Positions 7,975-64,000 are shown, counted from the first letter of the stretch. The stretch: DNA of 64,000 bases from Macrostomum lignano (GCA_002269645.1 NIVC01001426.1:62001-126000); one strand, 5' to 3'. Notes: generated by a model not told the origin, from the sequence alone. Numbers and translations are program-made.

Positions 7975-9254
7975 CTTTATGTGTGTTTAAATATGCTTGA
8001 TTGACCTTTCTTGTTCTGTATATTAGCGTCTTGCTTCAGTATGTTTTTCGTTTCTGTGAAGTCTTCAGATAACCAGGTTGTTTAGGTTGTACTATATCGG
8101 TTATTAAAGCGTATATTTGATGTGGTGTTCCTGACCGGTTAATCAGGGTTTTGAGCTGGTGCACCTTACCTTGTCTTTACCACAGATACTGGCATAACTA
8201 AATGGGCCACTCAGCACATTTGCGTGTAAACTACTTTCAGTTCAGTAGCAAGTTAAACTGAAGCATTTTTATGTATTTTTAAGCCAAGGTTCATTTATTG
8301 CCTCTTTCCAACCGCGCCTTTCCACACTACCACCCAATTTTTATTGCCTTTCTCGGAATTCCAGCCTAAAGCTGCAATGTACATTTCAGTGGACTGGCTA
8401 ATGTACATTATTGTTGAACCAAGGCTTCTAAACTTATCAAAGTCATTTCAGCTATCTGTAGTTTTATAAAATAGCTTCTGTATTCTTCTTTGCTACTGAA
8501 CTGAAAGTAGAAAGCTGTTTTGCTAAGTATAAATGCCTATGCCTATTTATTTTAGTATCTGTGGTCTTCACCTAACCTGCGTGTAAAAATGACCTGTTCA
8601 TTAATGCAACATTTTTTTCGTATCAGATTTGCTTTATAAATTGTTCAATTCACGTAATTGTATGACTACTTATAGTAATAATATATTAATAAATTTGTTG
8701 CTTAAAATATCCATGGACCTTTCAGTTTTGCGTTTAAAGTCAAAAAATTTTAAGTAAGCATTTTTCTGGAGAAGCATTTTCTATCTGTACTTTATAATTT
8801 GTTATTTTGTTGCTATCTTTACTTATTCTTTCATAAGGCGATATGTTTCTTGGAGTTAATTTATTTGAAAGTCGTAATAGCTCATTTTCCATGAAAAAGT
8901 TTTATAATGTTGCATATTCATTAGATTCCAATGATAATCACTTCCTTACCTGTTCATTGAATAACAAAGTAATTTTTGGATCGGCAATTACATTATACAC
9001 ACCTAGGCATTACTAACTCTGCTTATCTATAATATTGGTGCATCTGAGCGACAGTCTTAAAGATTGTTTGGTGCTGATTTCGCAAAGTTGTTGCATCTCA
9101 AATAAATTTACTGTTTCGTTTATATTTCTTTCTTTTAAAAAGGCTTAATTTGTTTATATTCTTACTGCTATTGGTTATTTTTGTGTTGATTATAGGATAT
9201 TTTTTAATTGAATGGTATTCAGTAATTATGTTTTTTTTACAATGACGCGACCAA

Positions 9255-9807: not shown

Positions 9808-12800
9808 AGTGAGTGTAATTCTGCTTGCAATACACGATTCTAGAAGCTATATTGCTATTTTTAGTTTATTTTCAAAGTTAGGGGATCTTTAATTAAAAGG
9901 AAAAATTGGCATTAAATTGGTAAAGCAGGTTTACAATGAAATTAACAAATTTAAAAAGGCAAATAATTGTCTACCGATATGTAGTGTAAACTATATTGTA
10001 GAGCTAATTTTATTAGTGTCTAAAGATGTGAAAATTTCACATTGAAAAATGTTATCTTGGTTGATGCAAAAAGTTCGAGTCTATGAAACCCACCGATATG
10101 TAGTGTAATAAACTTTATTAATTAATCTAACCCGATTCTTTCACCCAGTGTCGCTGGATCCTAACAACCCAACCAGTCGGCGTCAGCGCGACGCCAAGAA
10201 GAAAGGCGTTCCTGGAGGATCAAAAGCAGATCGGAAGCAGCGGAAGCAACAGCAGCAGGCCGCCGGCAGTTGCTGGGTGGATGCTTGGACCGAGCAGCCG
10301 GCCGCCAGTGGCTCGCGTCATCCCAGCCACCTTCGCGGCCGTGACATCGGCCTATTTTACGCCAATCGTCAACGCGAGAAACGTCAGTTTGAGGATATTT
10401 TTCATGCGCCAGAATTGATTCAACTGAGCGATTCAACCGCTGTCCGATTGCAACAGTTGCTAGGCGTTGCTACAGACGCTGGTGTTGCTAGCGGCGGCGT
10501 TAGCGGAGATACCGGTTTGTCTGCGATGTCGGTTGACGAAGCTGTCGCTTGTCGTTCAGCGAATTACAAAGCTTTGAAACCGAATGCCCAACTGGATGCC
10601 AAGCTGATGAAGGAGCTGCAGCTGATGGAGAAGCGAATTTCGCCTGCGATTGCCGAATGCAGGCAGCGGCTGCCCGTGTGGCAGGCCAGGGAACGGCTGG
10701 TTGCCGCCGTGAACCGCTGCGATCAGGTGAGGGGGGGCTGTGCGATTCTTATTGGGGCCTTCTGTGTTTTATGTGCTGCCTGTCTGTGTTTTGTGTGCTG
10801 CCTGTCTGTGTTTTATGTGTTGTCTGTCTGTGTTTTATGTGCTGCCTGTCTGTGTTTTATGTGTTGTCTGTCTGTGTTTTATGTGCTGCCTGTCTGTGTT
10901 TTATGTGTTGTCTGTCTGTGTTTTATGTGCTGCCTGTCTGTGTTTTGCGTGCTGTCTGTGTTTTATGTGCTGCCTGTCTGTGTTTTATGTGCTGCCTGTC
11001 TGTGTTTTGTGTGCTGTCTGTGTTTTATGTGCTGCCTGTCTGTGTTTCATGTGCTGCCTGTCTGTCTATATAAGCGAGATACGACAAGTGTAGCTCCAAT
11101 ATCTTGGTAGTTTTTCAACACAACTTTCTGCGAATTGCCAGGTGCTGGTTATGTCCGGCCCGACTGGATCCGGGAAGTCCACCCAGATGTCGCAGCTGCT
11201 GATTGACTCAGCCATTGCAACTGGTCATGGCTCCACGGCTCGAGTCGTGGTCACCCAGCCAAGGCGCCTGGCGGCCACCGCGCTAGCTGAACGAGTAGCT
11301 GAGGAGCGGGGCGAGTGGCTTGGAGTGTCTGTTGGATACCAGGTTCGGGACTGCTGTAGCGTATATCAGCTCCAGAACCTCAGCTGCTGGGCCAGCCTCC
11401 CAGATGCTCAGTTGCTGGGCCACCAGCCTCCCAGATCATCAGTTGCTGGGCCAGCCTCCCAGATGCTCAGTTGCTGGGCCACCAGCCTCCCAGATCATCA
11501 GTTGCTGGGCCAGCCTCCCAGATCCTCAGTTGGTGGGCCAGCCTCCCAGATCCTCAGATGCTGGGCCAGCCTCCCAGATCCTCAGTTGCTGGGCCAGCCT
11601 CCCAGATCCTTAGTTGCTGGGCCAGCCTTCCAGATCCTCAGTTGCTGGGCCAGCCTCCCAGATCCTCAGTTGGTGGGCCAGCCTCCCAGATCCTTAGTTG
11701 CTGGGCCAGCCTTCCAGATCCTCAGTTGCTGGGCCAGCCTCCCAGATCCTCAGTTGGTGGGCCAGCCTCCCAGATCCTCAGTTGCTGGGCCAGCCTCCCA
11801 GATCCTCAGTCGCTAGGCCAGCCTCCCAGATCCTTAGTTGCTGGGCCAGCCTCCCAGATCCTCAGTTGGTGGGCCAGCCTCCCAGATCCTCAGTCGCTGG
11901 GCCAGCCTCCCAGATACTCAGTCGCTGGGCCAGCCTCCCAGATCCTTAGTTGCTGGGCCAGCCTCCCAGATCCTCAGTTGCTGGGCCAGCCTCCCAGATC
12001 CTCAGTTGCTGGGCCAGCCTCCCAGATCCTCAGTCGCTAGGCCAGCCTCCCAGATCCTTAGTTGCTGGGCCAGCCTCCCAGATCCTCAGTTGGTGGGCCA
12101 GCCTCCCAGATCCTCAGTTGCTGGGCCAGCCTCCCAGATCCTCAGTCGCTAGGCCAGCCTCCCAGATCCTTAGTTGCTGGGCCAGCCTCCCAGATCCTCA
12201 GTTGGTGGGCCAGCCTCCCAGATCCTCAGATGCTGGGCCAGCCTCCCAGATCCTCAGTCGCTGGGCCAGCCTCCCAGATCCTTAGTTGGTGGGTCAGCCT
12301 CCCAGATCCTCAGATGCTGGGCCAGCCTCCCAGATCCTCAGTCGCTGGGCCAGCCTCCCAGATCCTTAGTTGCTGGGCCAGCCTCCCAGATCCTTAGTTG
12401 CTGGGCCAGCCTCCCAGATCCTCAGATGCTGGGCCAGCCTCCCAGATCCTCAGATGCTGGGCCAGCCTCCCAGATCCTTAGTTGCTGGGCCAGCCTTCCA
12501 GATCCTTAGTTGCTGGGCCAGCCTCCCAGATCCTCAGATGCTGGGCCAGCCTCCCAGAGTGTCAGTTGCTGGGCCAGCCTCCCAGATCCTCAGATGCTGG
12601 GCAAGCCTCCCAGATCCTTAGTTGCTGGGCCAGCCTCCCGGATCCTCAGTTGCTGGGCCAGCCTCCCAGATCCTCAGATGCTGGGCCAGCCTCCCAGATC
12701 CTCAGTTGCTGGGCCAGCCTCCCAGATCCTCAGATGCTGGGCCAGCCTCCCAGATCCTCAGATGCTGGGCCAGCCTCCCAGATCCTCAGATGCTGGGCCA

Positions 12801-15800
12801 GCCTCCCAGATCCTCAGTCGCTGGGCCAGCCTTCCAGATCCTTAGTTGCTGGGCCAGCCTCCCAGATCCTTAGTTGCTGGGCCAGCCTCCCAGATCCTCA
12901 GATGCTGGGCCAGCCTCCCAGATCCTTAGTTGCTGGGCCAGCCTTCCAGATCCTTAGTTGCTGGGCCAGCCTCCCAGATCCTCAGTTGCTGGGCCAGCCT
13001 CCCTGATCCTCAGTTGGTGGGCCAGCCTCCCAGATCCTCAGATGCTGGGCCAGCCTCCCAGATCCTTAGTTGCTGGGCCAGCCTTCCAGATCCTTAGTTG
13101 CTGGGCCAGCCTCCCAGATCCTCAGTTGCTGGGCCAGCCTCCCAGATCCTCAGTCGCTAGGCCAGCCTCCCAGATCCTCAGTCGCTAGGCCAGCCTCCCA
13201 GATCCTCAGTCGCTGGGCCAGCCTCCCAGATCCTTAGTTGCTGGGCCAGCCTTCCAGATCCTTAGTTGCTGGGCCAGCCTCCCAGATCCTCAGATGCTGG
13301 GCCAGCCTCCCAGAGTGTCAGTTGCTGGGCCAGCCTCCCAGATCCTCAGTTGCTGGGCCAGCCTCCCAGATCCTCAGTTGGTGGGCCAGCCTTCCAGATC
13401 CTCAGTTGCTGGGCCAGCCTCCCAGATCCTTAGTTGCTGGGCCAGCCTCCCAGATCCTCAGTTGGTGGGCCAGCCTCCCAGATCCTCAGTTGGTGGGCCA
13501 GCCTCCCAGATCCTCAGATGCTGGGCCAGCCTCCCAGATCCTCAGATGCTGGGCCAGCCTCCCAGATCCTCAGTTGCTGGGCCAGCCTCCCAGATCCTCA
13601 GATGCTGGACCAGCCTTCCAGATCCTCAGTTGCTGGGCCAGCCTCCCAAATCCTCAGTTGCTGGGCCAGCCTCCCAGATCCTCAGATGCTGGGCCAGCCT
13701 CCCAGATCCTCAGATGCTGGGCCAGCCTCCCAGATCCTCAGATGCTGGGCCAGCCTCCCAGATCCTCAGATGCTTGACCAGCCTTCCAGATCCTTAGTTG
13801 CTGGGCCAGCCTCCCAGATCCTCAGTTGCTGGGCCAGCCTCCCTGATCCTCAGTTGCTGGGCCAGCCTCCCAGATCCTCAGATGCTGGGCCAGCCTCCCA
13901 GATCCTTAGTTGCTGGGCCAGCCTTCCAGATCCTTAGTTGCTGGGCCAGCCTCCCAGATCCTCAGATGCTGGGCCAGCCTCCCAGAGTGTCAGTTGCTGG
14001 GCCAGCCTCCCAGATCCTCAGATGCTGGGCAAGCCTCCCAGATCCTTAGTTGCTGGGCCAGCCTTCCGGATCCTCAGTTGCTGGGCCAGCCTCCCAGATC
14101 CTCAGATGCTGGGCCAGCCTCCCAGATCCTCAGATGCTGGGCCAGCCTCCCAGATCCTCAGTCGCTGGGCCAGCCTCCCAGATCCTTAGTTGCTGGGCCA
14201 GCCTCCCAGATCCTCAGATGCTGGGCCAGCCTCCCAGATCCTCAGCTGTGGCTATTTATATCGCCACTGGAATCATGTCTCCAATCTCACCAATTCTTCC
14301 GTCAAAGGTTCGTCTGGAGCGCAAGATGCCGCAGCGCCTGGCGGGCTCAATCGTGTACTGCACCGTTGGCATTCTGCTGCGATGGCTGGAAAGTGACCCG
14401 TCACTGGCCAGCGTCAGCCATCTGATTGTTGACGAGGTGACGTGAAATTCTTTCATATTGTACGAGTATATTATCTAGTTGGTTAGAGCGTCGGACTCAA
14501 GACTGAAATGAGATTTGACTCTGACATAGTTGCGCCTGAGCACATCCGGCCCATTATTCCAGTGCATGTACATCTGTTGACTCGTCAAACTTGTCAGGTA
14601 CACGAGCGCAGCGCGGAGACGGACTTACTGCTCGCTGAATTAAAGAGAACAATCTTGCCTAGCCGACCAGATCTCAAACTCGTGCTCATGTCTGCCACGC
14701 TAGACGCCGAACAGTTCTGCCGCTACTTCGGGCCGTCAAGCGAAAGCGCGTCAGTTGAAGGCCGCCTGTACCCGGTTAAAGTTCGCTCTCTGGAACAGTG
14801 CCTTAGCGAGTCGAATTTTGAATTCTTCTCAAAATCGGGCTCCAATTTGACCAGCCTGGCCAATAAGAATCGGCAGGCAATGCAGAATCGGCTGAGGTCG
14901 GATCGGATCGCTCCGCGCGAAGCTCGATCCCGATTGGCTGAGCGGGAACGCGAGCTCCGATTGGCTGCCAATGAGGCTGTGAAGAAGTTTCAATTGTCAT
15001 CCAGCCATGCGGATCTGCTGGTTGCTATGGGCTGCGAGGAGCCGCCCGTGGAACTGGTGGCTCACATGATTAGTTACGTGCATAGGACACAGCCGGCTGG
15101 GGCTGTGCTAGTCTTTGTGCCCGGAATGAAGCAGATTAAGGATTTAATTACGCTGCTGGTAATCAAATATTCTGTGATTTTATCTTTCATTTTTAGTATC
15201 CGAATTTAGTTTATGGACTAGCAATCTAAGTGCCCCCCTTCGGGACACTTAGGAGGAGCAAGGAGCAAAAATTAGTCATGCAAATCCATTAAAAAAGCAA
15301 ATTTTAGCAACCAATTCCTTCTTCAGCTTTATAATCACCTTATTCCAGTAAAATTGTCACGGACCAAGATGCTTGCTATGAATCTCTTTTTTTTCTAAAA
15401 GTAACTAAACGACAACATAAAAAGCCTTCACAAAGATAGCAGGCATTTCCCCTAAATAGAGAGCATCCCCCAGATAGCAAGCATCCTCCAGATAGCAAGC
15501 ATCCCCCAGATAGCAAGCATCCCCCAGATAGCAAGCATCCCCCAGATAGCAAGCATCCCCCAGATAGCAAGCATCCCCCAGACAGCAAGCATCCCCCAGA
15601 TAGCAAGCATCCCCCCAAATGGCAAGCACCCCCAGATAGCAAGCTTCCTCCGATAGCAAGCATCCCTCCGATAGCAAGCATCCCTTCGATAGCAAGCATC
15701 CCTTCGATAGCAAGCATCCCTCCGATAGCAAGCATCCCTTCGATAGCAAGCATCCCCCAGATAGCAAGCATCCCCCCGATAGCAAGCATCTGCAGATAGC

Positions 15801-18800
15801 AAGCATCCCCCAGATAGCAAGCATCCCCCAGATAGCAAGCATCCCCCAGATAGCAAGCATCCCCAGATAGCAAGCATCCCCCAGATAGCGAGCATCCCCC
15901 AGATAGCAAGCATCCCCCAGATAGCAAGCATCCCCCAGATAGTAAGCACCCCGGGCCCCCAGATAGCAAGCGTGTCCCCCCCCTACTGTGTATTGGGAAT
16001 TCCTGTAGAATACCCTGTTCCAGCTGGTTCGGTACCTTACTATTTGATTCGTAATGGGAAAATGTGGTACATAATTTCTGACAGGTACCTTACTACTTGT
16101 TTTGCAATTGAAAATTTGAGTATGTACGTAATTTTCAATTACTACTCACTATTTAAGCATTTGGGCCATAGACTAAAGGCAGCAGTTGTTTTGAGTGCAG
16201 CGCTCTGCCACTCTGGATTAAGTCAACTGCTCCTAAGCTCAAATTATAAAAATTAAGTAGGAAAATATTTTTAATACTAGGCACGTATTAACTGCACTAC
16301 TTGTAGTAGAAATCCTAGTTTTTAGCTATAAAAATTAGTCAGGACGCAATAAAACACCAAATGATATTATTTATGAACCAACCATTAAAATCGGGCAGAA
16401 CTCCGACTCCGCCTGCTCCAATGGTTGTCACGTACTGCCTCTGCACTCTCGTCTGCCCAGCCGGGATCAGCGCCAGGTATTCCTACCTGCACCAGCCGGC
16501 AAAAGAAAGGTAGTATTGGCTACTAATATTGCTGAGACTTCCCTCACCATTGACGACGTTGTGTACGTGATTGACACCGGCTTTGCTAAGCTGTCCGGCT
16601 ATCATCATTTGGCCATGTCCGACAGCCTGTCAGCCAGTCCCATCAGTCTGGACAATGCTCGACAACGCGAAGGTCGAGCTGGTCGAGTGCAGCCTGGCGT
16701 CTGCTATCGATTGTATTCGAAATTTGCCGAATCCAGAATGCCGCATAGGTTACCGCCGGAAGTGCTCAGATTGAGTCTGGAGGATTTCCTGTTGCATGTA
16801 AATCATTTTAAAATGTTTGTAATTAGACAGGGTGTCTGTGATTAGCCTGGAGTGTCTGTGATTAGTCTGGGTTGTCTGTGATTAGTCTGGGTTGTCTGTG
16901 ATTAGTCTGGGGTGTCTGTGCTTAGTCTGGGGTGTCTGTCATTAGTCTGGGGTGTCTGTGCTTAGTCTGGGGTGTCTGTCATTAGTCTGGGGTGTCTGTG
17001 CTTAGTCTGGGGTGTCTGTGATTAGTCTGGGGTGTCTGTGTTTAGTCTGGGGTGTCTGTGCTTAGTCTGGGGTGTCTGTGATTAGTCTGGGGTGTCTGTG
17101 TTTAGTCTGGGGTGTCTGTGTTTAGTCTGGGTGTCTGTGATTAGTCTGGGGTGTCTGTGATTAGTCTGGGGTGTCTGTGATTAGTCTGGGGTGTCTGTGA
17201 TTAGTCTGGGGTGTCTGTGATTAGTCTGGGGTGTCTGTGATTAGTCTGGGGTGTCTGTGATTAGTCTGGGGTGTCTGTGATTAGTCTGGGGTGTCTGTGC
17301 TTAGTCTGGGGTGTCTGTGCTTAGTCTGGGGTGTCTGTGATTAGTCTGGGGTGTCTGTGCTTAGTCTGGGGTGTCTGTGATTAGTCTGGGGTGTCTGTGT
17401 TTAGTCTGGGGTGTCTGTGTTTAGTCTGGGGTGTCTGTGTTTAGTCTGGGGTGTCTGTGATTAGCCTGGGGTGTCTGTGATTAGTCTGGGGTGTCTGTGA
17501 TTAGTCTGGGTTGTCTGTGATTAGTCTGGGGTGTCTGTGATTAGTCTGGGGTGTCTGTGCTTAGTCTGGGGTGTCTGTGATTAGTCTGGAGTGTCTGTGC
17601 TTATTCTGGATGTTTGTGATTAGCCTGGATATCTGTGATTAGCCTGGATATCTGTGATTAGCCTGGGGTGTCTGCGATTAGCTTAAGGTGTCTGTGATTA
17701 GTCTGGAGTGTCTGTGCTTATTCTGGATGTCTGTGATTAGCCTGGATATCTGTGATTAGCCTGGATATCTGTGATTAGCCTGGGGTGTCTGCGATTAGCT
17801 TAAGGTGTCTGTGATTAGTCTGGAGTGTCTGTGCTTATTCTGGATGTCTGTGATTAGCCTGGATATCTGTGATTAGCCTGGATATCTGTGATTAGCCTGG
17901 GGTGTCTGCGATTAGCTTAAGGTGTCTGTGATTAGTCTGGGGTGTCTGTGACTACCTGGGATGTCCGTGATAGTCTTCAAACGTACTTAACCTTAGTCTT
18001 AACCTTGTAGCCTTCAAATCCCCGTCGCCCAGGTAAAGCTGCTCCACCCGGACCTACCCGCCGCCGAGTTCCTGGCGCAGATGCCGGACCCGCCGCCTCA
18101 GGAGCACGTACGTCAGGCTCAACACCTGCTCCAGGAGCTCGGCGCCCTGACACCCGACGAGGAGCTCACGCCAATGGGAAGGCACATTGCTCGCCTACCT
18201 CTACCCTGCCAGCTAGCCAAGATGGTGCTGCTGGCGGTCTGTTTCTCCTGCTTGGACCCGGTGCTGACCATCGCCGCTTCTCTGTCGCATCGCACGCCAT
18301 TCGAGACACCGCTAGGCGCCGAGCAAGAAGTGAAACAGTGCAAAATGCAATTAGCCGAAGGCTGCGAGTCCGACCACCTGTTGCTCTGGTTGGCCTACAA
18401 AGCTTGGTATCGGACCAAGCGCAACAGAGGGCTGAATGCCGCCTACGATTTTGCTAGGCGAAATTATTTGTCCCCAACTGTACTGCAGACGATCGAGGAA
18501 TTGAAGGCGCAACTGACCGACCAGCTAGCCCAGTACATGTCCATGAGCGATCAGTTCTACGACGAAGAAGCTCAATCAGAGTCTTCCGTGTCTGACCAAT
18601 CTGTAAATCGGTCTGACGAATCTGTAAATCGGTTTGATCAATCTGTAAATCGGTTTGATCAATCTGTAAATCGTTCAGACCAATCTGTAAATCGTTCAGA
18701 CCAATCTGTAAATCGGTCTGACCAATCTGTAAATCGGTCTGACCAATCTGTAAATCGGTCTGACCAATCTGCAAAGCCACTCACACTTCGCCGAAGCCGA

Positions 18801-20444
18801 TCAACTCCCTCTATTCAGTTGACATCTGATCATCCGCTGTTGAATCGCAACAGTCACCGATTAGAACTGATCCGCGCCGTGGTCACCGCCGGTCTCTATC
18901 CCAATATAGTTCGCTGCAAATCCCTCAAATCGAAGAAAGCCGTCGGCAGACCCGGCGAGCCGTCTTACGAACTGCCGCAATGCAGCGTCGCCTGCGGATT
19001 TGAAGAGCCGGCCTGGCTGGCCTACTTTGAGAAATGCTTGCTGAACGACAGGCGCACAGTGTCGCTGTTTGACGCCTCCCTGACCCGGCCGATCCACCTG
19101 CTGTTCTGCTGCGCCCAGGCTCGGCACTCGCACGAATGCGGCGTTCAACTGGCCGTGCTGGACGACTGGATCCGGCTGGCTGCCACACCCGCCGCCTTCT
19201 CCACAGTGCTGGTGCGTGCTGCGGACTGGCGGGCAGACAGACAGTCATTGAGACCTCTGAGACACTCGGACACTAAGACATTTATGCATTGAGACACTAG
19301 GACATTGAGACACTAGGACATTGAGACACTAGGACATTGAGACACTAGGTCATTGAGACACTAGGTCATTGAGACACCAGGACATTGAGACACTAGGTCA
19401 TTGAGACACCAGGACATTGAGACACTAGGACATTGAGACACTAGGACATTGAGACACTAGGTCATTGAGACACTAGGTCATTGAGACACCAGGACATTGA
19501 GACACTAGGTCATTGAGACACTAGGTCATTGAGACACTAGGACATTGAGACACTAGGACATTGAGACACCAGGACATTGAGACACTAGGTCATTGAGACA
19601 CTAGGACATTGAGACACTAGGACATTGAGACACTAGGTCATTGAGACACCAGGACATTGAGACACTAGGACATTGAGACACTAGGACATTGAGACACTAG
19701 GTCATTGAGACACTAGGTCATTGAGACACCAGGACATTGAGACACTAGGTCATTGAGACACTAGGTCATTGAGACACTAGGACATTGAGACACTAGGACA
19801 TTGAGACACCAGGACATTGAGACACTAGGTCATTGAGACACTAGGACATTGAGACACTAGGACATTGAGACACCAGGACATTGAGACACTAGGACATTGA
19901 GACACCAGGTCATTGAGACACTAGGACATTAAAACATTAAAACACTGGGACATCGAGACACCAAGACATTGTGACTGTAGGCCATTGAGACTCTAGAACA
20001 TGAAGACACTAGTACAATGGGACACTAAGACATCGAGACACTAGGACATAAAGACACGAGGACACTAAAATACTAGAATATTAAGACACTATGACACCAA
20101 AACCCTGGGAACACACGGACACCAGGGACACTTGAATTAAGATATCAGGACATTAAAACAATAATTCGATCCCATCGCTGATTTAAAAATCTATTCTCGT
20201 TCTCGATAATGCATGCAAAATACAAAAGTTTTATCCCCCCACCCCTCATCAAAGCTTCACATTCCACCCCCCGACATCATTTCAGGTTCTCCGCCACCGT
20301 CTCGACCTGCTGTTGGCCGATCTGATCCACAGGCCCGGCCGCTGTCTGAAAATCTGGTCGGCCGAGGCTGCCAACGACTCTCAAACGGCTTTCGATGCTC
20401 AAATTCTGAATGCCATCGCCGATCTTCTGGCTGGTGACGAGTGA
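9808..20444 (+). CDS. DHX36: DEAH-box RNA/G-quadruplex helicase DHX36 (RHAU), apparently complete
   Basis: Exons 10149-10726, 11142-11342, 14308-14436, 14598-15158, 16399-16797, 18033-19211, 20286-20444, plus a probable upstream exon ending 9808 that supplies the A of the ATG. RSM motif [69 protein letters not shown]2 and OB-like C-terminus ending [10 protein letters not shown]. All six coding introns are GT-AG, phase 0. Confidence 0.93.
10760..11065. repeat. 22-bp minisatellite in a DHX36 intron
   Basis: Unit CTGTCTGTGTTTTATGTGCTGC. Confidence 0.9.
11375..14247. repeat. 28-bp minisatellite, about 100 copies, in a DHX36 intron
   Basis: Unit GCTGGGCCAGCCTCCCAGATCCTCAGTT; recurring variant units suggest higher-order duplication. 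Confidence 0.95.
15218..15972 (-). mobile_element. Helitron 3' end carrying an 18-bp minisatellite array (15430-15972) in a DHX36 intron
   Basis: Minus strand ends hairpin (CTAAGTGTCCC..GGGGGGCACTTAG) + ATTGCTAG|T; upstream array unit GGGGGATGCTTGCTATCT, the same family as 48604-49860. Confidence 0.65.
16830..17960. repeat. 20-bp minisatellite in a DHX36 intron, with a roughly 120-bp higher-order repeat at its 3' end
   Basis: Unit GTGTCTGTGATTAGTCTGGG. Confidence 0.95.
18591..18770 (+). repeat. In-frame 21-bp coding repeat (SDQSVNR, 8 full copies plus a partial) inside a DHX36 exon
   Basis: Unit TCTGACCAATCTGTAAATCGG within the open 18033-19211 exon. Confidence 0.85.
19255..20150. repeat. 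16-bp minisatellite in the last DHX36 intron
   Basis: Unit GGACATTGAGACACTA, decaying towards the 3' end. Confidence 0.93.
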
Positions 20445-35182: not shown

Positions 35183-36288
35183 CTAATAGCCACCACGCCC
35201 GCCTGCAAAGTCATCGACACAGGGGGTTTGGCGGATCGCAAATAAGTTATTTAGTATAAAAGTGCATTTTTAACAAAATTTTATTTCACTAAAGCAAATC
35301 AACCTTGACACTCACCACGGCCACCGCGAAAGCCGCCGCCAATGCCGGCGCCGCCACGTCCGCGACCACCACCACGGCCGCCGGCGCCGTACGGCTGGAA
35401 TCGCTGCGGGCCGCCGCCGAATCCGCCAACCGGCTTGGCGGGGCCGCCAGCGTAGCCTTGGCTGCCGTAGGAGCCGAAACCGCCGCCATTGTCATAGGCG
35501 CCTTCGCCACCTTCGCTGTAGCCTCCGGCGTCGTAGCCTACGGCATCCCCGTAGCCACCGTAGCCTGCGTCACCGTAACCTCCATAGCCACCGTAGCCGC
35601 CTCCATAGCCGCCGCCATATCCGCCTCCGTAGCCACCCCCATATCCGCCGCCGCCGCCGCCGCCGCGCCCAGCGAAGCCGCCGCGAACGTTGAACCCGGA
35701 AGCTTGGCGAGCCTTCACCTCGGCCATCTGCTCTTTGGACAGGGCCTTCTTGCAGTCCACTCGCGGATTGCCGCCGATGTTGTGCGGCTTGTACAGAATC
35801 GCCTTGTCCACCGGATCGTAGTCCTTGAACGTGACGAAGCCGAAGCCGCGCGGCTTGCCAGTCTCCCGCATCACGGCAATCTCCGCTGACGCAACCTCAC
35901 CGTAGGAGCCGAAATACTCGCGCAGATCGTCCTCGGTGGTCTCCGGCTTCAGACCGCCCACAAACAGCTTCTCCACTCTCACGTGGCTCTCGTCCTTGTT
36001 CGCGTCACCCCGGGGCATCGCCCGCTTCGTGTCCACCTCCTTGTTGTCGAGCACATGCGGCCGGTTCGCCTGCGCGTCATCCACGCTCGACTCGTCCTTG
36101 TAGGTGACGAAGCCAAAGCCGCGAGACCGGCCAGACACCTTGTCCTTCATCACCACCACGTCAACAAGCTCGCCCCACTGGCCAAAGTGGCCCTTCAGAT
36201 CGTCTTCTGTCACGTTTGGCGTCAGGCCGCCAATAAACAGCTTTCTGAGCTGCTCAGTCTCCTTGTCGCCTCGGTTACCAGCCATCAT
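35183..36288 (-). CDS. HNRNPA1-like: hnRNP A/B-family RNA-binding protein, copy A (2 RRM + Gly/Tyr-rich tail, about 330 aa)
   Basis: Exon 35316-36288 (ATG at 36288) spliced in phase 1 to 35183-35202 (..GGRGGY*). RNP motifs KLFIGGL/RGFGFVTY and KLFVGGL/RGFGFVTF; KRAMPR and CKKALSK linkers. Confidence 0.92.
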
Positions 36289-38202
36289 GTTGAATTCTGA
36301 AGTCTGAAAGCAATCCAACTAGATTGGTTGGGCATTTAACAGAATGGAACCCTAGTAGGGTAGAGTTACAGACTTCAAATGATGATGACATTCTTTCAAT
36401 CACAGCCACACAAAGAACTTTCTAATGTCTGACCTTAAACGTCCTTATTGATCTAGAACACATACAGACAAGCGCTCAATCAATTCCAGATCATTGTTAA
36501 TCACATTCACGCTTCAACAATGCCCGAATAATTACATAATAATTAAATGACAACTAAGGAAACTCTTTCACGATAGAAAAAGGCTAGTTAAGCTAACGCA
36601 CGCACTGCCTCTGCTGCGAGAGCAACAATTTCGCTAGCTAGGAGCAACACCGGGCCTATTTAATAATTAGCTTTTTACAGCTTGGCCTGGCAGATTAGTA
36701 ACTCCTTTTCCATTAATAACTTATATTTCAGCCTGTCAACTCATGTTCATTTTTGATGCTAACATTGGGTCGATCAGATCAAATTATTAATCTTACACAA
36801 GCGAAATATGGAACAACAATTATCAACTAAATTAGAGTTTACCGCCTTTGATAAGTAATAAAAATAGCCCAAGCCTTGAATTTGAACAATGAAGCTACTA
36901 ATTGTGGTGAAAGTGAAGTTTTTCAGCGTGAGAAAAGTTAATTAATAACTACAAAAATAGTCACACCCGCTTACACTTACGACTATATGTATACTTATAC
37001 TACTACTAGTTATATAATAAGTTATTTTGCACCTAACTGACAACAATCATGTTCACGCAAGAGCAAAGTTGTAAGAGCAATTGACACAAAATTGCGTGTT
37101 GCCTTAAGCTTGAGGAATTCAAACAATATTTAATTAACTGGCATATTATTACAAGTGGCAGTTTTCTCAAAAACAGAACTGATAAATTACACAAGACTAA
37201 TTAGTATACAGCTTATTCATTACATATGGATAGGTAAATATGAACACTAAAAATCGACTATTAGCTGCTAAGTAAAACAGTCTTAAGTTGAGAAAATACT
37301 CGCTAGTCGCTACTAATGCCCGCCTGACACCTGAGGCTGCAGATAGTTATTCGAGCTGCAATTTAAATAATATTCCTCCCACATAGCCTTAGAACTCATG
37401 ACAAAATAAAATAAGGAATATGGGCACACTTCAGATTTATAAAAAAAATAAGTTCATAATCCCCATTTAGCAAAGAGTAATTGCACAACACATTTATTAG
37501 ACCTTGCCGTCTATGCATTAATAGTTAAGCTGGTGATTGGCTGCCTCACTGACTTCGGGGTCGAGATTTCAGTGCAGTCCGCTGAACAACCTTTTCAATA
37601 ACGTGGCTGATTCCATTACCAACATGATCTGTGCTCTCCTTTTGATTGGCTAATTATCTTAGCCCGAATTATCTCCTCACTCAGTCCATTGTCGAGACCA
37701 GGCCTGTCCTACTTACGCTATAAAAACGGTCTCAACACGCACACACAATCTCCTAGGTTGCTTAACATCTGAGTGGCCCTGCGCTTCAGACTGACTGACT
37801 GACTGGGTGTGTGTGTGTGACTTTTGCTCAACCTGAAATTAGTAGATATAAATATAGATTTAATGACTGATTCTTAAGTTAATTATAAGCACATTTTCTA
37901 GCATATAAACACCGTACACTTAACTTACAGAGAACAACTTTCTTAAAGATAGTTTGAGCTAATAAAAAATTAGCCTTGCACGCAGTTCAAACAGGCGCAC
38001 GCATACAGCAACAGATTTTAGTGAGCAATAAAAACAAAAAATTGATTAAATTTGCAATCAAACTTACCCCGAATTCCATGAGAACAGCATCCAATTGGTA
38101 AACAGACGACAGAGAGATTTAGTAGCAGGTTTTCCCCAAGACTCGAATTACAGGCAGCATAAAAGTCGATTGTGCCTTCCGTTAGTTAATCAGCCAGTCC
38201 CA

Positions 38203-39404
38203 ATTAGTAACCGCCTGCAATATTTTGTGGTGAAATTTACAAGATGAATATTAGAGCAAAAATATCTTAATCCCATATAGCGAGTTTTAATTTTGAGCGC
38301 AATTCTTTACCAGCAATTTTGCAATTGAAAATAAATGCGCCAAAAACTAAGCCAACCGGCTCGCTAACAACACTCACCACGACCACCCCGGAACCCACCA
38401 GTGGCACCGCCGCCGCGTCCGCGACCTCCACCACGGCCGCCGGCGCCGTACGGCTGGAATCGCTGCGGGCCGCCGCCGAATCCGCCAACCGGCTTGGCGG
38501 GGCCGCCAGCGTAGCCTTGGCTGCCGTAGGAGCCGAAACCGCCGCCAGCCGCTGCGCCATTGCCGTAGGCGCCTTCACCACCTTCGCTGTAGCCGCCCAT
38601 GTCGGCACCGGCGGCGTAACCTCCGGCGTAACCAGCCTCGCCATAGCCACCGCCGTAGCCGCCGTCGCCATAGCCACCAGCATAGGTCCCATTGCCGTAG
38701 CCTCCACCGTAGCCGCCTCCATAGCCGCCGCCATATCCGCCTCCGTAGCCACCCCCATATCCGCCTCCGCCGCCGCGCCCAGCGAAGCCGCCGCGAACGT
38801 TGAACCCGGAAGCTTGGCGAGCCTTCACCTCGGCCATCTGCTCTTTGGACAGGGCCTTCTTGCAGTCCACTCGCGGATTGCCGCCGATGTTGTGCGGCTT
38901 GTACAGAATCGCCTTGTCCACCGGATCGTAGTCCTTGAACGTGACGAAGCCGAAGCCGCGCGGCTTGCCAGTCTCCCGCATCACGGCAATCTCCGCTGAC
39001 GCAACCTCACCGTAGGAGCCGAAATACTCGCGCAGATCGTCCTCGGTGGTCTCCGGCTTCAGACCGCCCACAAACAGCTTCTCCACTCTCACGTGGCTCT
39101 CGTCCTTGTTCGCGTCACCCCGGGGCATCGCCCGCTTCGTGTCCACCTCCTTGTTGTCGAGCACGTGCGGCCGGTTCGCCTGCGCGTCATCCACGCTCGA
39201 CTCGTCCTTGTAGGTGACGAAGCCGAAGCCGCGAGACCGGCCAGACACCTTGTCCTTCATCACCACCACGTCAACAAGCTCGCCCCACTGGCCAAAGTGG
39301 CCCTTCAGATCGTCTTCTGTCACGTTTGGCGTCAGGCCGCCAATAAACAGCTTTCTGAGCTGCTCAGTCTCCTTGTCGCCTCGGTTACCATTGCCAGCCA
39401 TCAT
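38203..39404 (-). CDS. HNRNPA1-like: hnRNP A/B-family RNA-binding protein, copy B (about 345 aa)
   Basis: Exon 38378-39404 spliced in phase 1 to 38203-38213 (..GGY*); RRMs identical to copy A at protein level. Confidence 0.92.
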
Positions 39405-40354
39405 TTTTCTTATTTGCTCATGCAAAGAAATGTTATTTCTTTTTTAATCGAGTGCATGGCTTTTTTGTCTTTATGCTGTAAGTATAGCATTACAAAAGTG
39501 AAGATCATAGATAAATTGCTATTAATGGATTTAAGTTGATTTGATTAGTTTAACACTTCAACAGGCAATCTTATTGGAATTCTGAAAAAGCATTTACAAT
39601 TACATTACCATAAGTCCTCACTGGTTTAAAATGAGCTAAAAGCAAAAAGGCTTTGACCTTGTAGTTAGTGAGTTTGCATCTATGGTAAAAACCTTCCCAA
39701 GTAATGCTTTTCGAGGACAAGTTATTAATAGATTGGCCTTCAAATTTGTAGTTTCCCATTCCTAGTGATTTAGGTATATCATATTTTTGTTGGAATCCTG
39801 GCCTTACTATCAAATACAAGCAACACAATATATTATGACCTGACTATAATAAAATACCTAATTATATTTGTTAATTTGGCAATGTATTATTAGTTTTGTA
39901 TAACACTCTGAAAATGAAAATTGTTTTAAAAAATATAAGGTTTTAAAAATTATCCTAAAGTATTCTTAAAGGAATCAGGTTCCAAAAAAGTATAACATAC
40001 TCTACTCTATTCTAGCCTACTCTACTCTAGCACCTTTTTTATAAATGAGCACCTTGTATACTATTTCAGTTTTAGAAGACAATTATTTGGATATTAAAAT
40101 TGCCTTAAAATGATTGGGTTTCAAAAATATAGCATGCCTTGTCTTTTAGCATCTAAACCTTAAACCACTTGCACATGATGTCTAAAAAAATAGCCCTATT
40201 GCACAGAGTGACAGGCCTTGGCTTTAATTTCATACAATATGAAAAAACTATATATTACAAAATAGACTGCAATGCACACATCTTTCAAGTTAATAAATGA
40301 TTGTTTTTAATGTTGTTAGTATATACAAATAATTGTTAAATAAAGTATAGTGCC

Positions 40355-57354: not shown

Positions 57355-58860
<1,506 letters not shown>

Positions 58861-59051
58861 ACGCTTTTAAGTTACAACTATCGCATAAATAACATAAACT
58901 TGAATTCTCAGTATGCACAAGTCCTAATAATATTACTGGTAGTAGACTGATATTGGATTAAAAACACAACAAAACACAAACTCACCCGGCTAATGAAATC
59001 ATTACTACTCCAGAGAGTCGCAAACGGGCAGTCAGCAGCCATCCTACAGTG

Positions 59052-62000
59052 ATGGATCAGTCCAATGGCGGGCCATTATCCAATGGGCCAATGTCCAACG
59101 GCCCAATGTCCAATGGTCCAATGTCCAACATGTCGGCCAATTTATCCGAGAACGGTTTCGGCCAGAGAAATCGTCGCCTAGAAGACTGGCAGCTGCCTAC
59201 TATATTGTATTTCTTAGCCTTCCATAAGAAACGGTTTCGATTTCCAAGAATCCGGCTCACGGATTTGGAGCGGGTGCTGGACAACCCGGATGCTGGCGTG
59301 CTGAGAGACATTCTGGCCAGGATATTGCGAGTCATGCGAGGCGGAGATCCAAATGTGACAATGCAGAATGCTGAGCAGCAGCTGGCGTTGTACTTTCAGG
59401 TGAGTGTCTAGCTGGATACTTTGATCATTATTTACCTGCTTATTTTTCCTGAAAATTTAAATGTTTTAGTTTTACAACGCCATTTTTAGAAGTAAAGTTA
59501 TTCTATTAGTATAAGTGCCATTTCTAGGAGTAAAGTGCCATTTCTAGGGATATAGTGCCATTTCTAGGAGTATAGTGCCATTTCTATTGATATAGTGCCA
59601 TTTCTATTGATATAGTGCCATTTCTAGGGATATAGTGCCATTCCTAGGTATATAATGCCATTCCTAGGGATATAGTGCCATTTCTAGAGATATAGTGCCA
59701 TTTCTAGGAGTATACTGCCATTTCTAGGAGTATAGTGCCATTTCTAGGAGTATAGTGCCATTTCTAGAGATATAGTGCCATTTCTAGGAGTATACTGCCA
59801 TTTCTAGGAGTATAGTGCCATTTCTAGGAATATAGAATATGGTGCCATTTAAAGGAGTATAGTGCTATTCCTAGGGATATAGTGGCATTTCTAGGAGTAT
59901 ACTGCCATTTCTAGGAGTATACTGCCATTTCTAGGAGTATAGTGCCATTTCTAAGAGTATAGTGCCATTTCTGTTAGTATAGTTGGCATTTCTAGGACTA
60001 TAAGTGCCATTTCTATGGGTTATAGTGCCCTTTCTAGGAATATAGTGTCATTATTTAATTCCTGCACAACATTTCCAACATCGAATTCAAAGCCTTCCTC
60101 TGCCGCATCATTTCTAGGAAAAGCGACCGCAAATTGCCAAGCAGCTATCAGCTAGTAAACTGGACGATCTGGGCTTTGAGTCGAAAACCCGCCTATTGAA
60201 AAAGGTGATTGATTATTTAAACGACGACCTGATCCCTAACTGGGAGATGGAGATGCGCTACGACTCTCAACAGCAGGACGATTGCGGCGCTATCAATTGC
60301 GGCGCCGATCGCAGAAATCGGCGCCACTTCTATTTGGACGATCACCGATTGTATCGGCAGAGATTCGACTTAGATGACAGCATCGGCGGAGGCGGAGGCG
60401 GCTCCAGTGGCGGCCCCTGCAGCGTCGGAAGCGTCGGCAGTGGCTGCGGCGGCGGCGCCAGCCCACCGGCGTCTCAGCAGGCCTACGAGATGGTTGTCGG
60501 ACCCTGCGCTGAGGATTGGGAAAAGTTCACCAACGATATGCTGGCCTCCAAGAATGAGAACGAGCGCGATCTGGGCGGTTTCCTGCAGGTTGGTTGGATG
60601 CTGACTGAAGGAGGCTCTGAATTCCTCTGGGAATAGCCTCTTAATTCCCCTGAGAATAGCCTCTGAATTCCCCTGAGAATAGCCTCTTATCTCCTCTGAG
60701 AATAGCCTCTTATCTCCTCTGAGAATAGCCTCTTAACTCCTCTGAGAATAGCCTCTTATCTCCTCTGAGAATAGCCTCTTAACTCCCCTGAGAATAGCCT
60801 CTTATCTCCTCTGAGAATAGCCTCTTATCTCCTCTGAGAATAGCCTCTTAACTCCCCTGAGAATAGCCTCTTATCTCCTCTGAGAATAGCCTCTTATCTC
60901 CTCTGAGAATAGCCTCTTAACTCCCCTGAGAATAGCCTCTTAATTTCCCTGAGAATACGCTCTCAATTCCACTGCGAATAGGCTCTTAATTCCCCTGAGA
61001 AAAGGCTCTTAATTCCCCTGAGAAAAGGCTCTTAATTCCCCTGAGAAAAGGCTCTGAATTGCCCTGAGAATAGCTTATGAATTCCACTGAGAATAGGCTC
61101 TTAATTGCCCTGAGAATAGCTTCTGAATTGCCCTAAAAATAGCTTCTGAATTCCCCTGAGAATAGGCTCTGAATTCCCCTGAGAATAGGCTCTGGATTCC
61201 CCTGAGAATAGGCTCTTAATTGCCCTAAGAAAAGCCTCCTAATTCCCCCTGAGAATGGCCCCGAAGCAATCTAATGCTCCTCAAAGTACTGCCTCCAATC
61301 CACTGCTTACAGGGCTTCCTCCTAGACGTCGTGGTCCCCGACCTGCGCCAGGGCAGCCACATGCTCGGCAACGAGGAGCTCCTGCCCGACTGCCTGCAGC
61401 GCATGGAGCGGCTGCACTGTCGGGAACTTCGCAAAGCCCGCAACGAGCCCGTGCCACCTGAGGAGGAAGCCGAGGCTGAAGCCGCCGCCGCCGAAGCTGC
61501 CGCCGCCGCTGGCCTCGAGGACGAGCAGCAGAATCCGCCTCAGCTGCAGCATCACGAGTTGCAGCAGCAGCATCATCATTATCAACAGCCGCAGCAGCCG
61601 CACAGCTGCCCGCCAGCGCAGAATAATTTCAACAGCGGCGGCGCGCAGATCGGCGGCCCAAGAAGCGTCGGCTATCAGCCCGGTGGTTCAACTCCGCACA
61701 CGCCGACTTCGATTACTCCTGCAGCATCTTTAGCTTCGTCTGTCAATACTTCTGTTGCTGCCGCAGCTGCTCCGTCAACTCCTGTATCCGCTTCTGCGGG
61801 ATCTTATCAGCAGCAACAGAATTCTTTGTCGGCGTCTTCTGCTCCGCCTGCAACGGCTTCAATGTCTGCGCCAGCTTCTGTTGGCGGCTGTGCAGCTGCT
61901 CAGGTGCAACAGCAGCAGGCACTGATGCGCGATGCTAGGGTGAGATTTTTTGCGTTCATTCAAAATCTAGGGTGAGATTTTTTGTGTGCATTCAAAATCT

Positions 62001-63740
62001 AAGGTGAGATTTTTTGTGTGCATTCAAAATCTAGGGTGATATTTTTTGTGTGCATTCAAAATGTAGGGTGAGATTTTTTGCGTGCATTCAAAATCTAGAG
62101 TGAGATTTTTTGCGTGCATTCAAAGTCTAGGGTGAGATTTTTTGCGTGCATTCAAAATCTAGGGTGAGATTTTTTGCGTGCATTCAAAGTCTAGGGTGAG
62201 ATTTTTGCGCGCCTTCAAAATCTAGGTTGAGATTTTTTGCGTGCATTCAAAATCTAGGGTGAGATTTTCAGAAAGATTCCAAATCTGGTGTGATATTTTC
62301 AAAATATTCAAAATCTAGGGTGAGATTTTCAAAAAGATTTAAAATTTCAAATCGATTCGAAATCTAGGGTAAGATTTGCGCAAGTCAGACTGATGATCAT
62401 TTTAGTGAAATTTTTAAGTAAGAACTACACGCTAGTAATCCTAATCATTTATTTTCCAGCACCCAATGTCGCCGATGTACAATCAGCACTATCATCAGCA
62501 GCAGCTTCCCTATCAGCAGCATCACCAGACTCTTCATCATCAACAATATCCCGATTATTATTCGCAACAATCTGTCAGCTGTTATCCGGGTTCGCGTTCG
62601 GACTTACCAGATCTGTCGCAGCAGTTCGGCCCCAGCGATTGCGTGAGTCATTATCACTGTTTCTAAGAAAGGGGATTGTACACCTTGTATGAGCGCAGAG
62701 AACGCTTGATTAGCTACTGAAGCAAAGAAAGAGTAGTAAGATAAGCGCATTCCAGAAAAATCAATGGCTCGCTAATTCACTGATTTTCCGCAGTTCGCTC
62801 CGGCTTCGAATACTCGGCCATCGTATCCTCATCAGCCAGCCACCTGTCAGGCGCTTCATCCTCAGCATCACCAGTCGAGCCCGCAGCTGTACTACCCCAA
62901 CCCCAGCGGCGCGCCCGCAGTTCGAGTCTTCACCAGTCACATGGCCAACGATTGCGCCCGCCAGTGCCTGAGCTCGCCAAGTTTAAAGCCGGACAAATGG
63001 CATCAGGCCTGCGTTGAACGAATGACGTCGCAGCAGCAGGCGCCGGCAGTTACGCCTGAACAGTTGCGCAAGCGGGAAGAGAAAATTCAACGAATCAAAC
63101 AGATTGGCCAGTCTGTTGGCCTGTCAGCCGCTGCCGCTGCTGTTGAACAGCCGCCACCGCCGCCCCCTCATTCAGCGGTGTCCTCTGCTGTCCAGTCTGG
63201 AGCGGCGGCCGCAGCGGCAGCGGCAGCGGTGGCAGCGGCTGGGCTGCCGCCGCCTCACAGCGCAGACCAGGCCAGGGCCCAGCAGCAGTGGAAAGACATG
63301 GTCAGGCAGCACTATATGGATAATCCTTATTTAGCTGCCACTTATCAGCAGCATCAGCAGCCGCAGTTCATGCAGCCGCCGCCCACGGCTATGATGCCGC
63401 CACCGCCTCATCATCAGCATCCTCAGCCTCATCAGATGCAGCATCCTAATTCAGCAGCAGCAGCAGCAGCCGCTGCAGCCGCTGCAGCCGCCGCGACAGC
63501 AAACTCTTCTTCCGGTAGCAACAAGCAACAGCCAGCGGCAGCTAAACGGCCCTATAATAACAATAGTAATAATAATAATATGACTAATAACAGCGGTAGC
63601 AATGCACAGCAGATGTACCCAGGCTATCACCAGCCGTATCAGCACCATCAGCAGAGGATGCTGGCTCCGCCTGGTCATCAACCTGCTCAATATGATGCTG
63701 AGCCGATGATGATGATGTACAACCCTCCGCCACCACCACC

Positions 63741-63771
<31 letters not shown>

Positions 63772-64000
63772 GCTGCCCAGCTTCCTCCTCCCGTCCCGCC
63801 GCCGCCTCCGCCTCCGGCAGCGCCGCCAGCTGTCAAGACGACAAAGCGACGCAAAAAGGAGCCGCAGGTGCCACAGCAGCCTCCGCAGTCAGTTGAGCAG
63901 CCGCCACCGCAGCCGCCATCTGTGGTGTCTGAGCCCTGCAAACTGCCTGCCGAGTCCATGCCGCCCTTCGATCACCCGAACCCGCCGCCCCCGCAGCAGC
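59052..64000 (+). CDS. BCL9-like: Chimeric chromatin/Wnt coactivator: CECR2-like DDT-WHIM1-WHIM2/3 fused to BCL9/Legless HD1-HD2-HD3; over 945 aa, incomplete at the 3' window edge
   Basis: Exons 59052-59399, 60118-60588, 61313-61939, 62460-62642, 62794->64000; four GT-AG phase-0 introns, no stop. DDT-like WQLPTILYFL..FRFP.I.L.DLE..L...D...L.DILA.IL; WHIM1-like LDDLGFESKTRLLKKVIDYL; WHIM2 CGADRRNRRHFYL...RLYRQ; WHIM3 EDWEKFTNDML.SKNENERDL..FL. HD1 VRVFTSHMANDCARQCL (62920), HD2 VTPEQLRKREEKIQRIKQI (63049), HD3 WKDMVRQHY (63289). Basic KRRKK at 63844. The last exon is absent from the ORF track, probably because its stop lies beyond the window. Confidence 0.78.
59510..60050. repeat. 20-bp minisatellite in intron 1 of the DDT/BCL9 gene
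   Basis: Unit TAGTGCCATTTCTAGGAGTA. Confidence 0.92.
60625..61255. repeat. 23-bp minisatellite in intron 2 of the DDT/BCL9 gene
   Basis: Unit CTGAGAATAGCCTCTTATCTCCT. Confidence 0.92.
61936..62372. repeat. 32-bp minisatellite in intron 3 of the DDT/BCL9 gene; unit contains the exon-intron junction
   Basis: Unit TAGGGTGAGATTTTTTGCGTGCATTCAAAATC begins at the real donor AGG|GTGAGA. Confidence 0.9.

Follow-up and report, generated by a model that had tools for sequence, protein, structure and literature searches.

A BCL9/Legless-type gene of the flatworm Macrostomum lignano with a predicted CECR2-like N-terminal module, and its occurrence in other flatworms and a nemertean

The DNA analysed here is a 64,000-nt window from the flatworm Macrostomum lignano (GCA_002269645.1, NIVC01001426.1:62001-126000), in which positions are counted from the first nucleotide, and the gene in question occupies its last 5 kb, from position 59052 onwards. 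The five exons found there are probably one gene, the M. lignano member of the BCL9/Legless lineage, in which the BCL9 motifs HD1, HD2 and HD3 follow a CECR2-like head. The proteins of this lineage likely start with a folded module of ~270 residues that is homologous to the DDT/WHIM1/WHIM2/WHIM3 region of CECR2 and is not accompanied by a bromodomain. That the locus is a single gene and orthologous to BCL9 is highly probable, and sequence comparison makes it very probable that the head is distantly homologous to the DDT/WHIM part of CECR2. The combined architecture is conserved in Platyhelminthes and in one nemertean.

The five exons were re-derived from the sequence, and all four introns are of the GT..AG type and in phase 0 (Table 1). 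Once spliced, the exons total 2,836 nt, corresponding to 945 codons with zero stops, in a frame that remains open where the window ends (64000); read-through of every donor reaches a stop after 3 to 15 codons. An earlier note on this stretch, made from the sequence alone, had described the same five exons and four phase-0 introns without a stop, and the sole refinement concerns the acceptor AG of exon 2, whose last base is at 60117. The read-through stop that it had reported behind exon 3 was reproduced as well, ending at 61975 after 11 codons, and every peptide that it had quoted is present in the window. The N-terminus encoded by exon 1 is kept in the paralog model P0004. The first 43 codons of exon 3 (61313-61441) finish the conserved module ('GFLLDVVVPDL...RELRKAR') and align to the helix 'FLK..lFelV...ELxELRR' in all orthologues and in the paralogs P0005 and P0013. 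The minisatellite of intron 3 begins 5 bp inside exon 3, and each of its units contains a copy of the donor, so that the 5' splice site 'CTAGG|GTGAGA' is present ~12 times; the first copy is the sole one in phase with the exon 4 acceptor. At the 5' end of the gene, a (TAGA)n microsatellite of 1.5 kb (57356-58861, ~376 copies, 95% match) stops 190 bp short of the start codon, and the ATG (59052) is preceded at a distance of 2 bp by an acceptor-like 'tcctacag', which could represent a trans-splice acceptor or that of an upstream exon.

The distribution of the module was determined by a filter-free single-sequence HMMER search across 1.84 billion representative proteins. Just 11 proteins matched, with E-values of 6e-15 to 2e-9 beyond the M. 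lignano copies. Matches were obtained in the tapeworm Hymenolepis diminuta (P0006), Clonorchis sinensis (P0007, with Opisthorchis in the same cluster), Paragonimus westermani (P0008), Echinostoma caproni (P0010), Protopolystoma xenopodis (P0011), Schistosoma species (P0012 and P0027) and the nemertean Tubulanus polymorphus (P0009, XP_074659835.1), and all of these orthologues are labelled uncharacterized. Word-indexed homologue searches, one with the N-terminal 291 residues and one with the family alignment, both yielded M. lignano proteins only, and the latter reached neither CECR2 nor other phyla. The module is N-terminal in every HMMER match, with an offset of ~90 residues in Paragonimus. 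In the full-length models (Hymenolepis, Clonorchis, Paragonimus, Schistosoma, Tubulanus and one M. lignano paralog), BCL9-type motifs are located downstream of the module, among them 'HVMVFTTEMANDAA', 'VTQEQLENRKNKMATLERIH' and 'REIAWMQQQ' in Hymenolepis and 'QIFVFSTALANKAADSILRRQCKSLIQYH', 'NLTPEQLQRREEHLASLRKIQQMLFPEQ' and 'REWYRLQCEYYDEKRR' in Tubulanus. The motif order DDT > WHIM2 > WHIM3 > HD1 > HD2 > HD3 > 'KRPY' > 'K[KR]RK' is collinear in 7/7 proteins where the motifs are present, by patterns that were written after the sequences had been seen; the paralog model, which is partial, lacks several of them, and the HD3 pattern is unmatched in Hymenolepis. No HD1 was detectable by profile or pattern in three flukes (Clonorchis P0007, Paragonimus P0008 and Schistosoma P0012/P0027). 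The head is retained in these flukes, as are HD2, HD3 and the C-terminal blocks, and a stretch such as 'QQLYTVD' is a possible HD1 remnant. The C-terminal blocks of the orthologues read 'TSASLASLA', 'NNTFFNAQL' and 'TIQYLP'.

The nemertean protein connects the family to BCL9. It passes the Pfam BCL9 family PF11502 (E 1.4e-12; 47.7 bits vs a cut-off of 25), and its HD1 matches the solved chains of Legless (3zpv, E 2.7e-6), BCL9 (2vpe, E 1.9e-5) and B9L (2xb1, E 0.005). Because of these matches, the Tubulanus protein is an unambiguous BCL9/Legless with the same head. Since the architecture recurs in tapeworms, flukes and a ribbon worm, it represents a conserved gene family and not an assembly accident. 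The notion of a one-off fusion in M. lignano is thereby refuted: the related genomes in which the same arrangement was found include a tapeworm, flukes and at least one nemertean. The 50% cluster of the Schistosoma protein P0012 also contains entries named 'Proline dehydrogenase' (PRODH), which were considered as an alternative fusion and rejected; P0019 and P0026 are unrelated PRODH sequences, and the names therefore reflect a clustering or annotation artefact and not a third domain. The mixed cluster probably arises from some Schistosoma model fusing two neighboring genes.

What weighs against the proposed architecture are sub-threshold or absent matches for both halves of the window protein and the layout of the orthologous loci, each given below beside the evidence that it qualifies. 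For the head, an alignment of seven modules (A2) exhibits five conserved blocks. Compared by hhalign with the N-terminus of human CECR2 (residues 1-314), A2 scored 96.9% with an E-value of 1.9e-10 over 200 columns, spanning the DDT helices through WHIM3, and control comparisons with the reversed sequence and ten shuffles reached at most 0.5% (E >= 0.12). A single pairwise BLASTP comparison of the window module with CECR2 gave an E-value of 4e-10. The identity of the CECR2 target sequence is backed by its Pfam matches only (KIAA2026_hel 3.4e-10, WSD 2.4e-5, DDT 7.5e-4, WHIM1 0.046). Block by block, the DDT helices, the WHIM1 helix and the WHIM2 hairpin 'G.D..G..Y.Y....(L/M)Y(K/R)E' align with CECR2, as does the WHIM3 pattern 'W......(S/T)..E(R/Y).L..(L/F)L...(F/L)'; in the window the WHIM2-like strands read AINCGADRRNRRHFYLDDHRLYRQR. 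The two differ in that the window protein has no bromodomain and continues into BCL9, and in that the distance is too great for linkage by an HMMER database search, CECR2 being absent from the matches of the N-module search.

Direct assignment of the head to a known family falls short of this. At E <= 10, the window protein matches none of the Pfam families DDT (PF02791), WHIM1 (PF15612) and WSD (PF15613), with which CECR2 itself scores no better than borderline. Its sole related match is PF23450 (KIAA2026_hel; residues 48-92 vs profile positions 2-47, E 0.023), and the Tubulanus orthologue matches the same family (residues 76-108 vs 107-139, E 0.042) and WHIM1 (E 0.034, below the cut-off); both PF23450 matches are sub-threshold, with 15 bits vs a gathering score of 27.8. 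Searches of PDB sequences with the N-module (phmmer) and with the A2 profile gave chance matches only. For the window module, AF2 gave a model of mediocre quality (pLDDT 67), with a predicted hairpin over 'RHFY..DHRLYR' within the WHIM2-like strands. The Tubulanus module was modelled with good confidence (pLDDT 84, pTM 0.77) as a helical bundle with a four-stranded WHIM2/WHIM3 sheet. With Foldseek against the PDB, the best E-values were 0.49 for the window and 0.71 for Tubulanus, and no DDT-WHIM chain was among the matches listed. As Pfam thresholds and fold matches were missed, membership in the module family rests on remote homology. The likeness of the N-terminal third to the CECR2 DDT/WHIM pattern, which the earlier note had pointed out, hence stands as homology over the whole length by hhalign and BLASTP, but not as a thresholded Pfam or fold assignment. 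A Pfam scan revealed no bromodomain in the window protein, as the earlier note had remarked, or in three orthologues with complete models (P0006, P0007 and P0009), and the gene is therefore not a CECR2 orthologue.

PF23450, the helical domain of KIAA2026/BRD10, is the sole Pfam family that matches both the window and the Tubulanus protein, in both cases below the gathering score, and it is also strong on CECR2. It fits the CECR2 N-terminus used here far better than DDT, WSD and WHIM1 do, and therefore seems to overlap the DDT/WHIM1 region. Judging from these profile matches, KIAA2026/BRD10 may carry a CECR2-type module. A literature search, judged by titles and abstracts, turned up no function for PF23450. 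Ioc3, Itc1, ACF1/BAZ and BPTF belong to the same DDT and WHIM motif family, shared via CECR2 by established classification; they differ from the present module in that no sequence profile matched their PDB chains and no Foldseek match was obtained, including to Ioc3.

DDT-WHIM modules of CECR2 (in CERF), ACF1/BAZ1A (in ACF) and Ioc3 (in ISW1a) bind the ISWI ATPase and/or linker DNA, and CECR2 is an accessory subunit of the ISWI complex CERF. By analogy, the N-terminal module would bind an ISWI ATPase and/or linker DNA. HD2 would bind armadillo repeat 1 of beta-catenin, by homology and from the 2gl7 complex. By homology with flies and humans, HD1 would bind the PHD finger of Pygo (PMC2726290), and HD3 is predicted to bind the Chip/LDB-SSDP complex, ChiLS (PMC5352222). 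One polypeptide could thus couple an ISWI nucleosome-sliding remodeller to the beta-catenin/Pygo complex at TCF enhancers. Recruitment of ISWI by the head, which draws on analogy with other DDT-WHIM proteins, is put forward tentatively and is somewhat less probable than not.

The main rival to ISWI recruitment is that the head is a helical module of the CECR2/KIAA2026 type with a different role, namely DNA or nucleosome binding, autoinhibition, or docking of another enhanceosome subunit, which we regard as rather unlikely. Such a role would fit the Pfam results, in which the head touches PF23450 and, in Tubulanus, WHIM1, but neither DDT nor WSD is detected in the window or the orthologues, and in which PF23450 is the best family for CECR2 too. 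It would also fit the lack of a structural match to solved ISWI-bound DDT-WHIM proteins in the Foldseek search of the PDB, and the literature joining BCL9 and ISWI, which, judged by title, consists of reviews or unrelated work. However, the homology to CECR2 covers all four motif blocks, and CECR2 forms CERF with SNF2L and SNF2H via this very region.

That the two halves belong to one gene is questioned by a second alternative, which is improbable in our view: a bromodomain-less CECR2-like gene (exons 1-3) and an adjacent BCL9 gene starting from exon 4 could be in frame by chance and have been merged by gene predictors. In-frame ATGs do occur within exon 4, and the early stop behind the exon 3 donor would suit a separate first gene. 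None of the Tubulanus, Hymenolepis and Schistosoma loci has a single exon covering the module together with HD1 or HD2, and introns of 7.5 and 10 kb part the two halves in Hymenolepis and Schistosoma. Moreover, the orthologues are all predicted gene models, and the M. lignano models disagree with one another, P0001 skipping exon 3 and P0004 and P0005 being frameshifted. On the other hand, four successive phase-0 junctions without a stop over 945 codons argue against chance, and different pipelines call the same order as one gene in at least 8 species of two phyla. The Tubulanus gene is compact, with 10 coding exons spread over 11.3 kb, and its final module exon is separated from the HD1 exon by only ~430 bp, which include a small exon. 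In P0006, P0007 and P0009, neither a bromodomain nor any other ending follows the module. Tubulanus, Hymenolepis and Schistosoma have two intron positions of the module in common ('...RLRLQ|DL...' and '...Y.Y.D|DLRLY...'); these positions are absent from M. lignano, whose introns sit elsewhere.

The M. lignano models bear on the same question. P0001 (UniProt A0A1I8J858, 481 residues) is this gene from another record, 99% identical with few substitutions. It joins exons 1, 2, 4 and 5, and a database model therefore already unites both halves. It skips exon 3; because the first 43 codons of that exon align to the conserved helix, exon 3 is part of the gene and P0001 is mis-spliced. P0003, P0004, P0005 and P0013 are models of a paralog with 53-74% identity. 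P0013 (64% by BLASTP, 74% in the trimmed alignment) contains in a single protein the module, an exon-3-like segment, HD1 ('VRVFASQMANECSRQC...DQWHQAW') and HD2 ('ITAEQQRKREEKIQRIMQIGQ'), and the arrangement of module and BCL9 motifs is thus kept at two M. lignano loci. The frameshifts of P0004 and P0005 run through the module or through HD1 and HD2. UniRef names attached to these entries ('Histone acetyltransferase', 'SAP domain-containing', 'Trithorax group protein osa', 'BHLH domain-containing') are unrelated to the sequences. Existing M. lignano models for the locus are accordingly wrong or fragmentary, and their UniRef names mislead.

The identity of the C-terminal half was addressed with profiles built from outside the flatworms; the HD1 profile combined human BCL9, B9L, Legless and Tubulanus, and the HD2 profile combined human and Tubulanus sequences. 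Among the 1,421 six-frame open reading frames (ORFs) of the window, the last exon is the top match for both. The E-values of the window are marginal (0.22-0.56 for HD1, 0.11 for HD2, with a best domain E-value of 0.0078 for HD2), and the non-flatworm HD1 profile matches Hymenolepis with an E-value of 0.0013. With Hymenolepis and trematode motifs added, the window reaches 0.009 for HD1 and 0.0016 for HD2; both are the best non-training matches among ~1,430 sequences, where the next non-family E-values are 2.7 and 0.22, respectively. HD1, HD2 and HD3 follow one another in one polypeptide, in the order of the orthologues. The human HD1 and HD2 strings with which the earlier note had compared them are exact copies of the PDB chains 2vpe_B and 2gl7_C.

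At the residue level, HD2 (VTPEQLRKREEKIQRIKQIGQSV) keeps the conserved Arg and has I, I, I and V at the positions of the hydrophobic ladder, which in human HD2 are L363, L366, I369 and L373. The 9-residue motif in HD3 (QQQWKDMVRQHYMD), identified by inspection, has a W followed by H-Y at +7/+8, where the human string given in the earlier note has F-Y. The HD3 helix is characterized by a Trp that is invariant and by an F/Y doublet further downstream (PMC5352222). HD1 consists of a beta-strand and a helix, with six side-chain contacts at T182, A185, N186, A189, I200 and V201 (Fiedler 2008, PMC2726290). The window HD1 (VRVFTSHMANDCA) keeps the beta-strand and four of these six, T182 (as S), A185, N186 and A189, and carries P and D at the equivalents of I200 and V201. 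Compared with BCL9, BCL9L (B9L) and Legless, the window protein is likewise long, disordered and rich in Pro/Gln, with HD1, HD2 and HD3 in the same order, and shares the HD1 core 'V.VF[ST][ST].MAN..A', the HD2 pattern 'EQL..RE..[LI]Q.[LI]..I', and, by inspection, the HD3 Trp with a downstream aromatic residue; it differs in the diverged tail of HD1 and, as a family, in the folded DDT/WHIM-like module at its N-terminus. Human BCL9/B9L and fly Legless are not known to contain such a module, their N-termini being disordered. One published description of the Legless/BCL9 domains covers HD1-3 and conserved blocks only downstream of HD2, and neither 'N-terminus' nor 'DDT' occurs in its text (PMC5352222).

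It might be argued that the BCL9-like motifs are a chance resemblance within a low-complexity tail and that the gene is only a CECR2-like paralog, which appears very improbable. The window protein has no Pfam BCL9 match (PF11502, the beta-catenin-binding helix of HD2) at E <= 10, and phmmer searches of all PDB sequences with the HD1-HD3 region, or with HD1 or HD2 alone, gave chance matches only and no BCL9 chains, the coiled coils of PACSIN and MBD2 ranking ahead of BCL9 for HD2. Yet HD1 and HD2 each rank first among the ORFs of the window, share one exon and are correctly ordered, and both become significant with the Hymenolepis and trematode intermediates. In addition, the Tubulanus orthologue is unambiguously a BCL9 and all eight motifs are collinear. 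The BCL9 identity claimed in the earlier note is consequently borne out for the family, for the motif order and for the top-ranking matches, mainly via the orthologues, but the window protein itself stays below the Pfam BCL9 threshold. More generally, the window protein alone yields no significant Pfam match for either half, and it is the orthologues that settle its identity. An assembly misjoin between 61.9 and 62.8 kb is hardly credible: minisatellite-filled introns are error-prone to assemble, but the independent database model P0001, the diverged paralog P0013 and the orthologues in other genomes all show the same join.

The literature search found nothing joining BCL9 with 'DDT domain' or with Macrostomum; publications on BCL9 together with CECR2, ISWI or planarian were unrelated or general, judged by title and abstract, and no description of a flatworm BCL9 was found, judged by title. 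Given that the orthologues are labelled uncharacterized and that no matching literature was found, the architecture exists in databases yet appears undescribed. The claim that no protein of this kind had been described is therefore upheld in that sense, but such proteins were already deposited as 'uncharacterized', including A0A1I8J858. As Platyhelminthes and Nemertea are the only phyla in which the single-sequence HMMER search found the architecture, it may have arisen by a lineage-specific fusion. A more specific scenario, which we consider rather unlikely as a whole, is that a CECR2-type head was fused once to BCL9/Legless in the ancestor of Platyhelminthes and Nemertea, and that this Wnt/beta-catenin co-activator would carry its own ISWI-recruiting module. 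If so, the fusion would be a rare genomic change backing the 'Parenchymia' grouping, and its distribution, restricted so far to these two phyla, could serve as a phylogenetic marker.

BCL9/Legless is regarded as a disordered adaptor of short linear motifs, and the role of Wnt in axis polarity during regeneration is modelled mainly in flatworms. A folded, remodeller-associated domain on BCL9 would provide a direct and testable link between beta-catenin/Pygo and ISWI, which are otherwise linked only indirectly. Were this link real, nucleosome sliding would be hard-wired to the Pygo/beta-catenin enhanceosome, which governs regeneration and the polarity of the body axis.

Table 1. Features of the BCL9/Legless-type gene in the M. 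lignano window (positions counted from the first nucleotide of the window; aa, amino acid position in the spliced protein).
Feature	Position	Strand	Description
Exon 1	59052-59399	+	Start codon, SNGPM-repeat N-terminus, DDT-like helices
DDT-like helices (exon 1)	59187-59336	+	aa 46-95; alignment to CECR2 residues 18-65
'GDPNV...LALYFQ' block (exon 1)	59343-59399	+	
Intron 1	59400-60117	+	GT..AG, phase 0; mostly 20-bp minisatellite, ~27 copies (59508-60052)
Exon 2	60118-60588	+	Acceptor AG ends at 60117
WHIM1-like helix (exon 2)	60160-60228	+	
WHIM2-like strands (exon 2)	60289-60363	+	AINCGADRRNRRHFYLDDHRLYRQR
Gly-rich insert (exon 2)	60364-60465	+	Lineage-specific to M. lignano
WHIM3-like helices, first half (exon 2)	60484-60588	+	
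Intron 2	60589-61312	+	GT..AG, phase 0; mostly 23-bp minisatellite, 28 copies (60615-61260)
Exon 3	61313-61939	+	Module end, then low-complexity Ala/Gln/Ser linker
Intron 3	61940-62459	+	GT..AG, phase 0; 32-bp minisatellite, 12.5 copies (61935-62329)
Exon 4	62460-62642	+	Gln/His/Tyr-rich linker, 61 codons; also in UniProt model P0001
Intron 4	62643-62793	+	GT..AG, phase 0
Exon 5	62794-64000	+	HD1, HD2, HD3; open at window end
HD1 (exon 5)	62920-63003	+	aa 586; VRVFTSHMANDCA
HD2 (exon 5)	63049-63117	+	aa 629; VTPEQLRKREEKIQRIKQIGQSV
HD3 (exon 5)	63280-63333	+	aa 706; QQQWKDMVRQHYMD
'KRPY' motif (exon 5)	63538-63561	+	
Basic 'KRRKK' motif (exon 5)	63841-63861	+	

Elsewhere in the window, a protein kinase gene lies at ~4000-8000 on the plus strand (Pkinase E 1.3e-30, exon 7330-7974), followed on the same strand by a DEAH/HA2-type helicase gene (10148-19292) with HA2 domains at 18081-19292. 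Long tandem repeats in the introns of the helicase gene give rise to repetitive pseudo-ORFs when translated (11.4-14.4 kb). On the minus strand, two tandem, near-identical and intronless ORFs (35299-36318 and 38364-39425) encode hnRNP A/B-like proteins with two RRMs and a Gly/Tyr-rich part, each matching RRM_1 with an E-value of ~2e-36.

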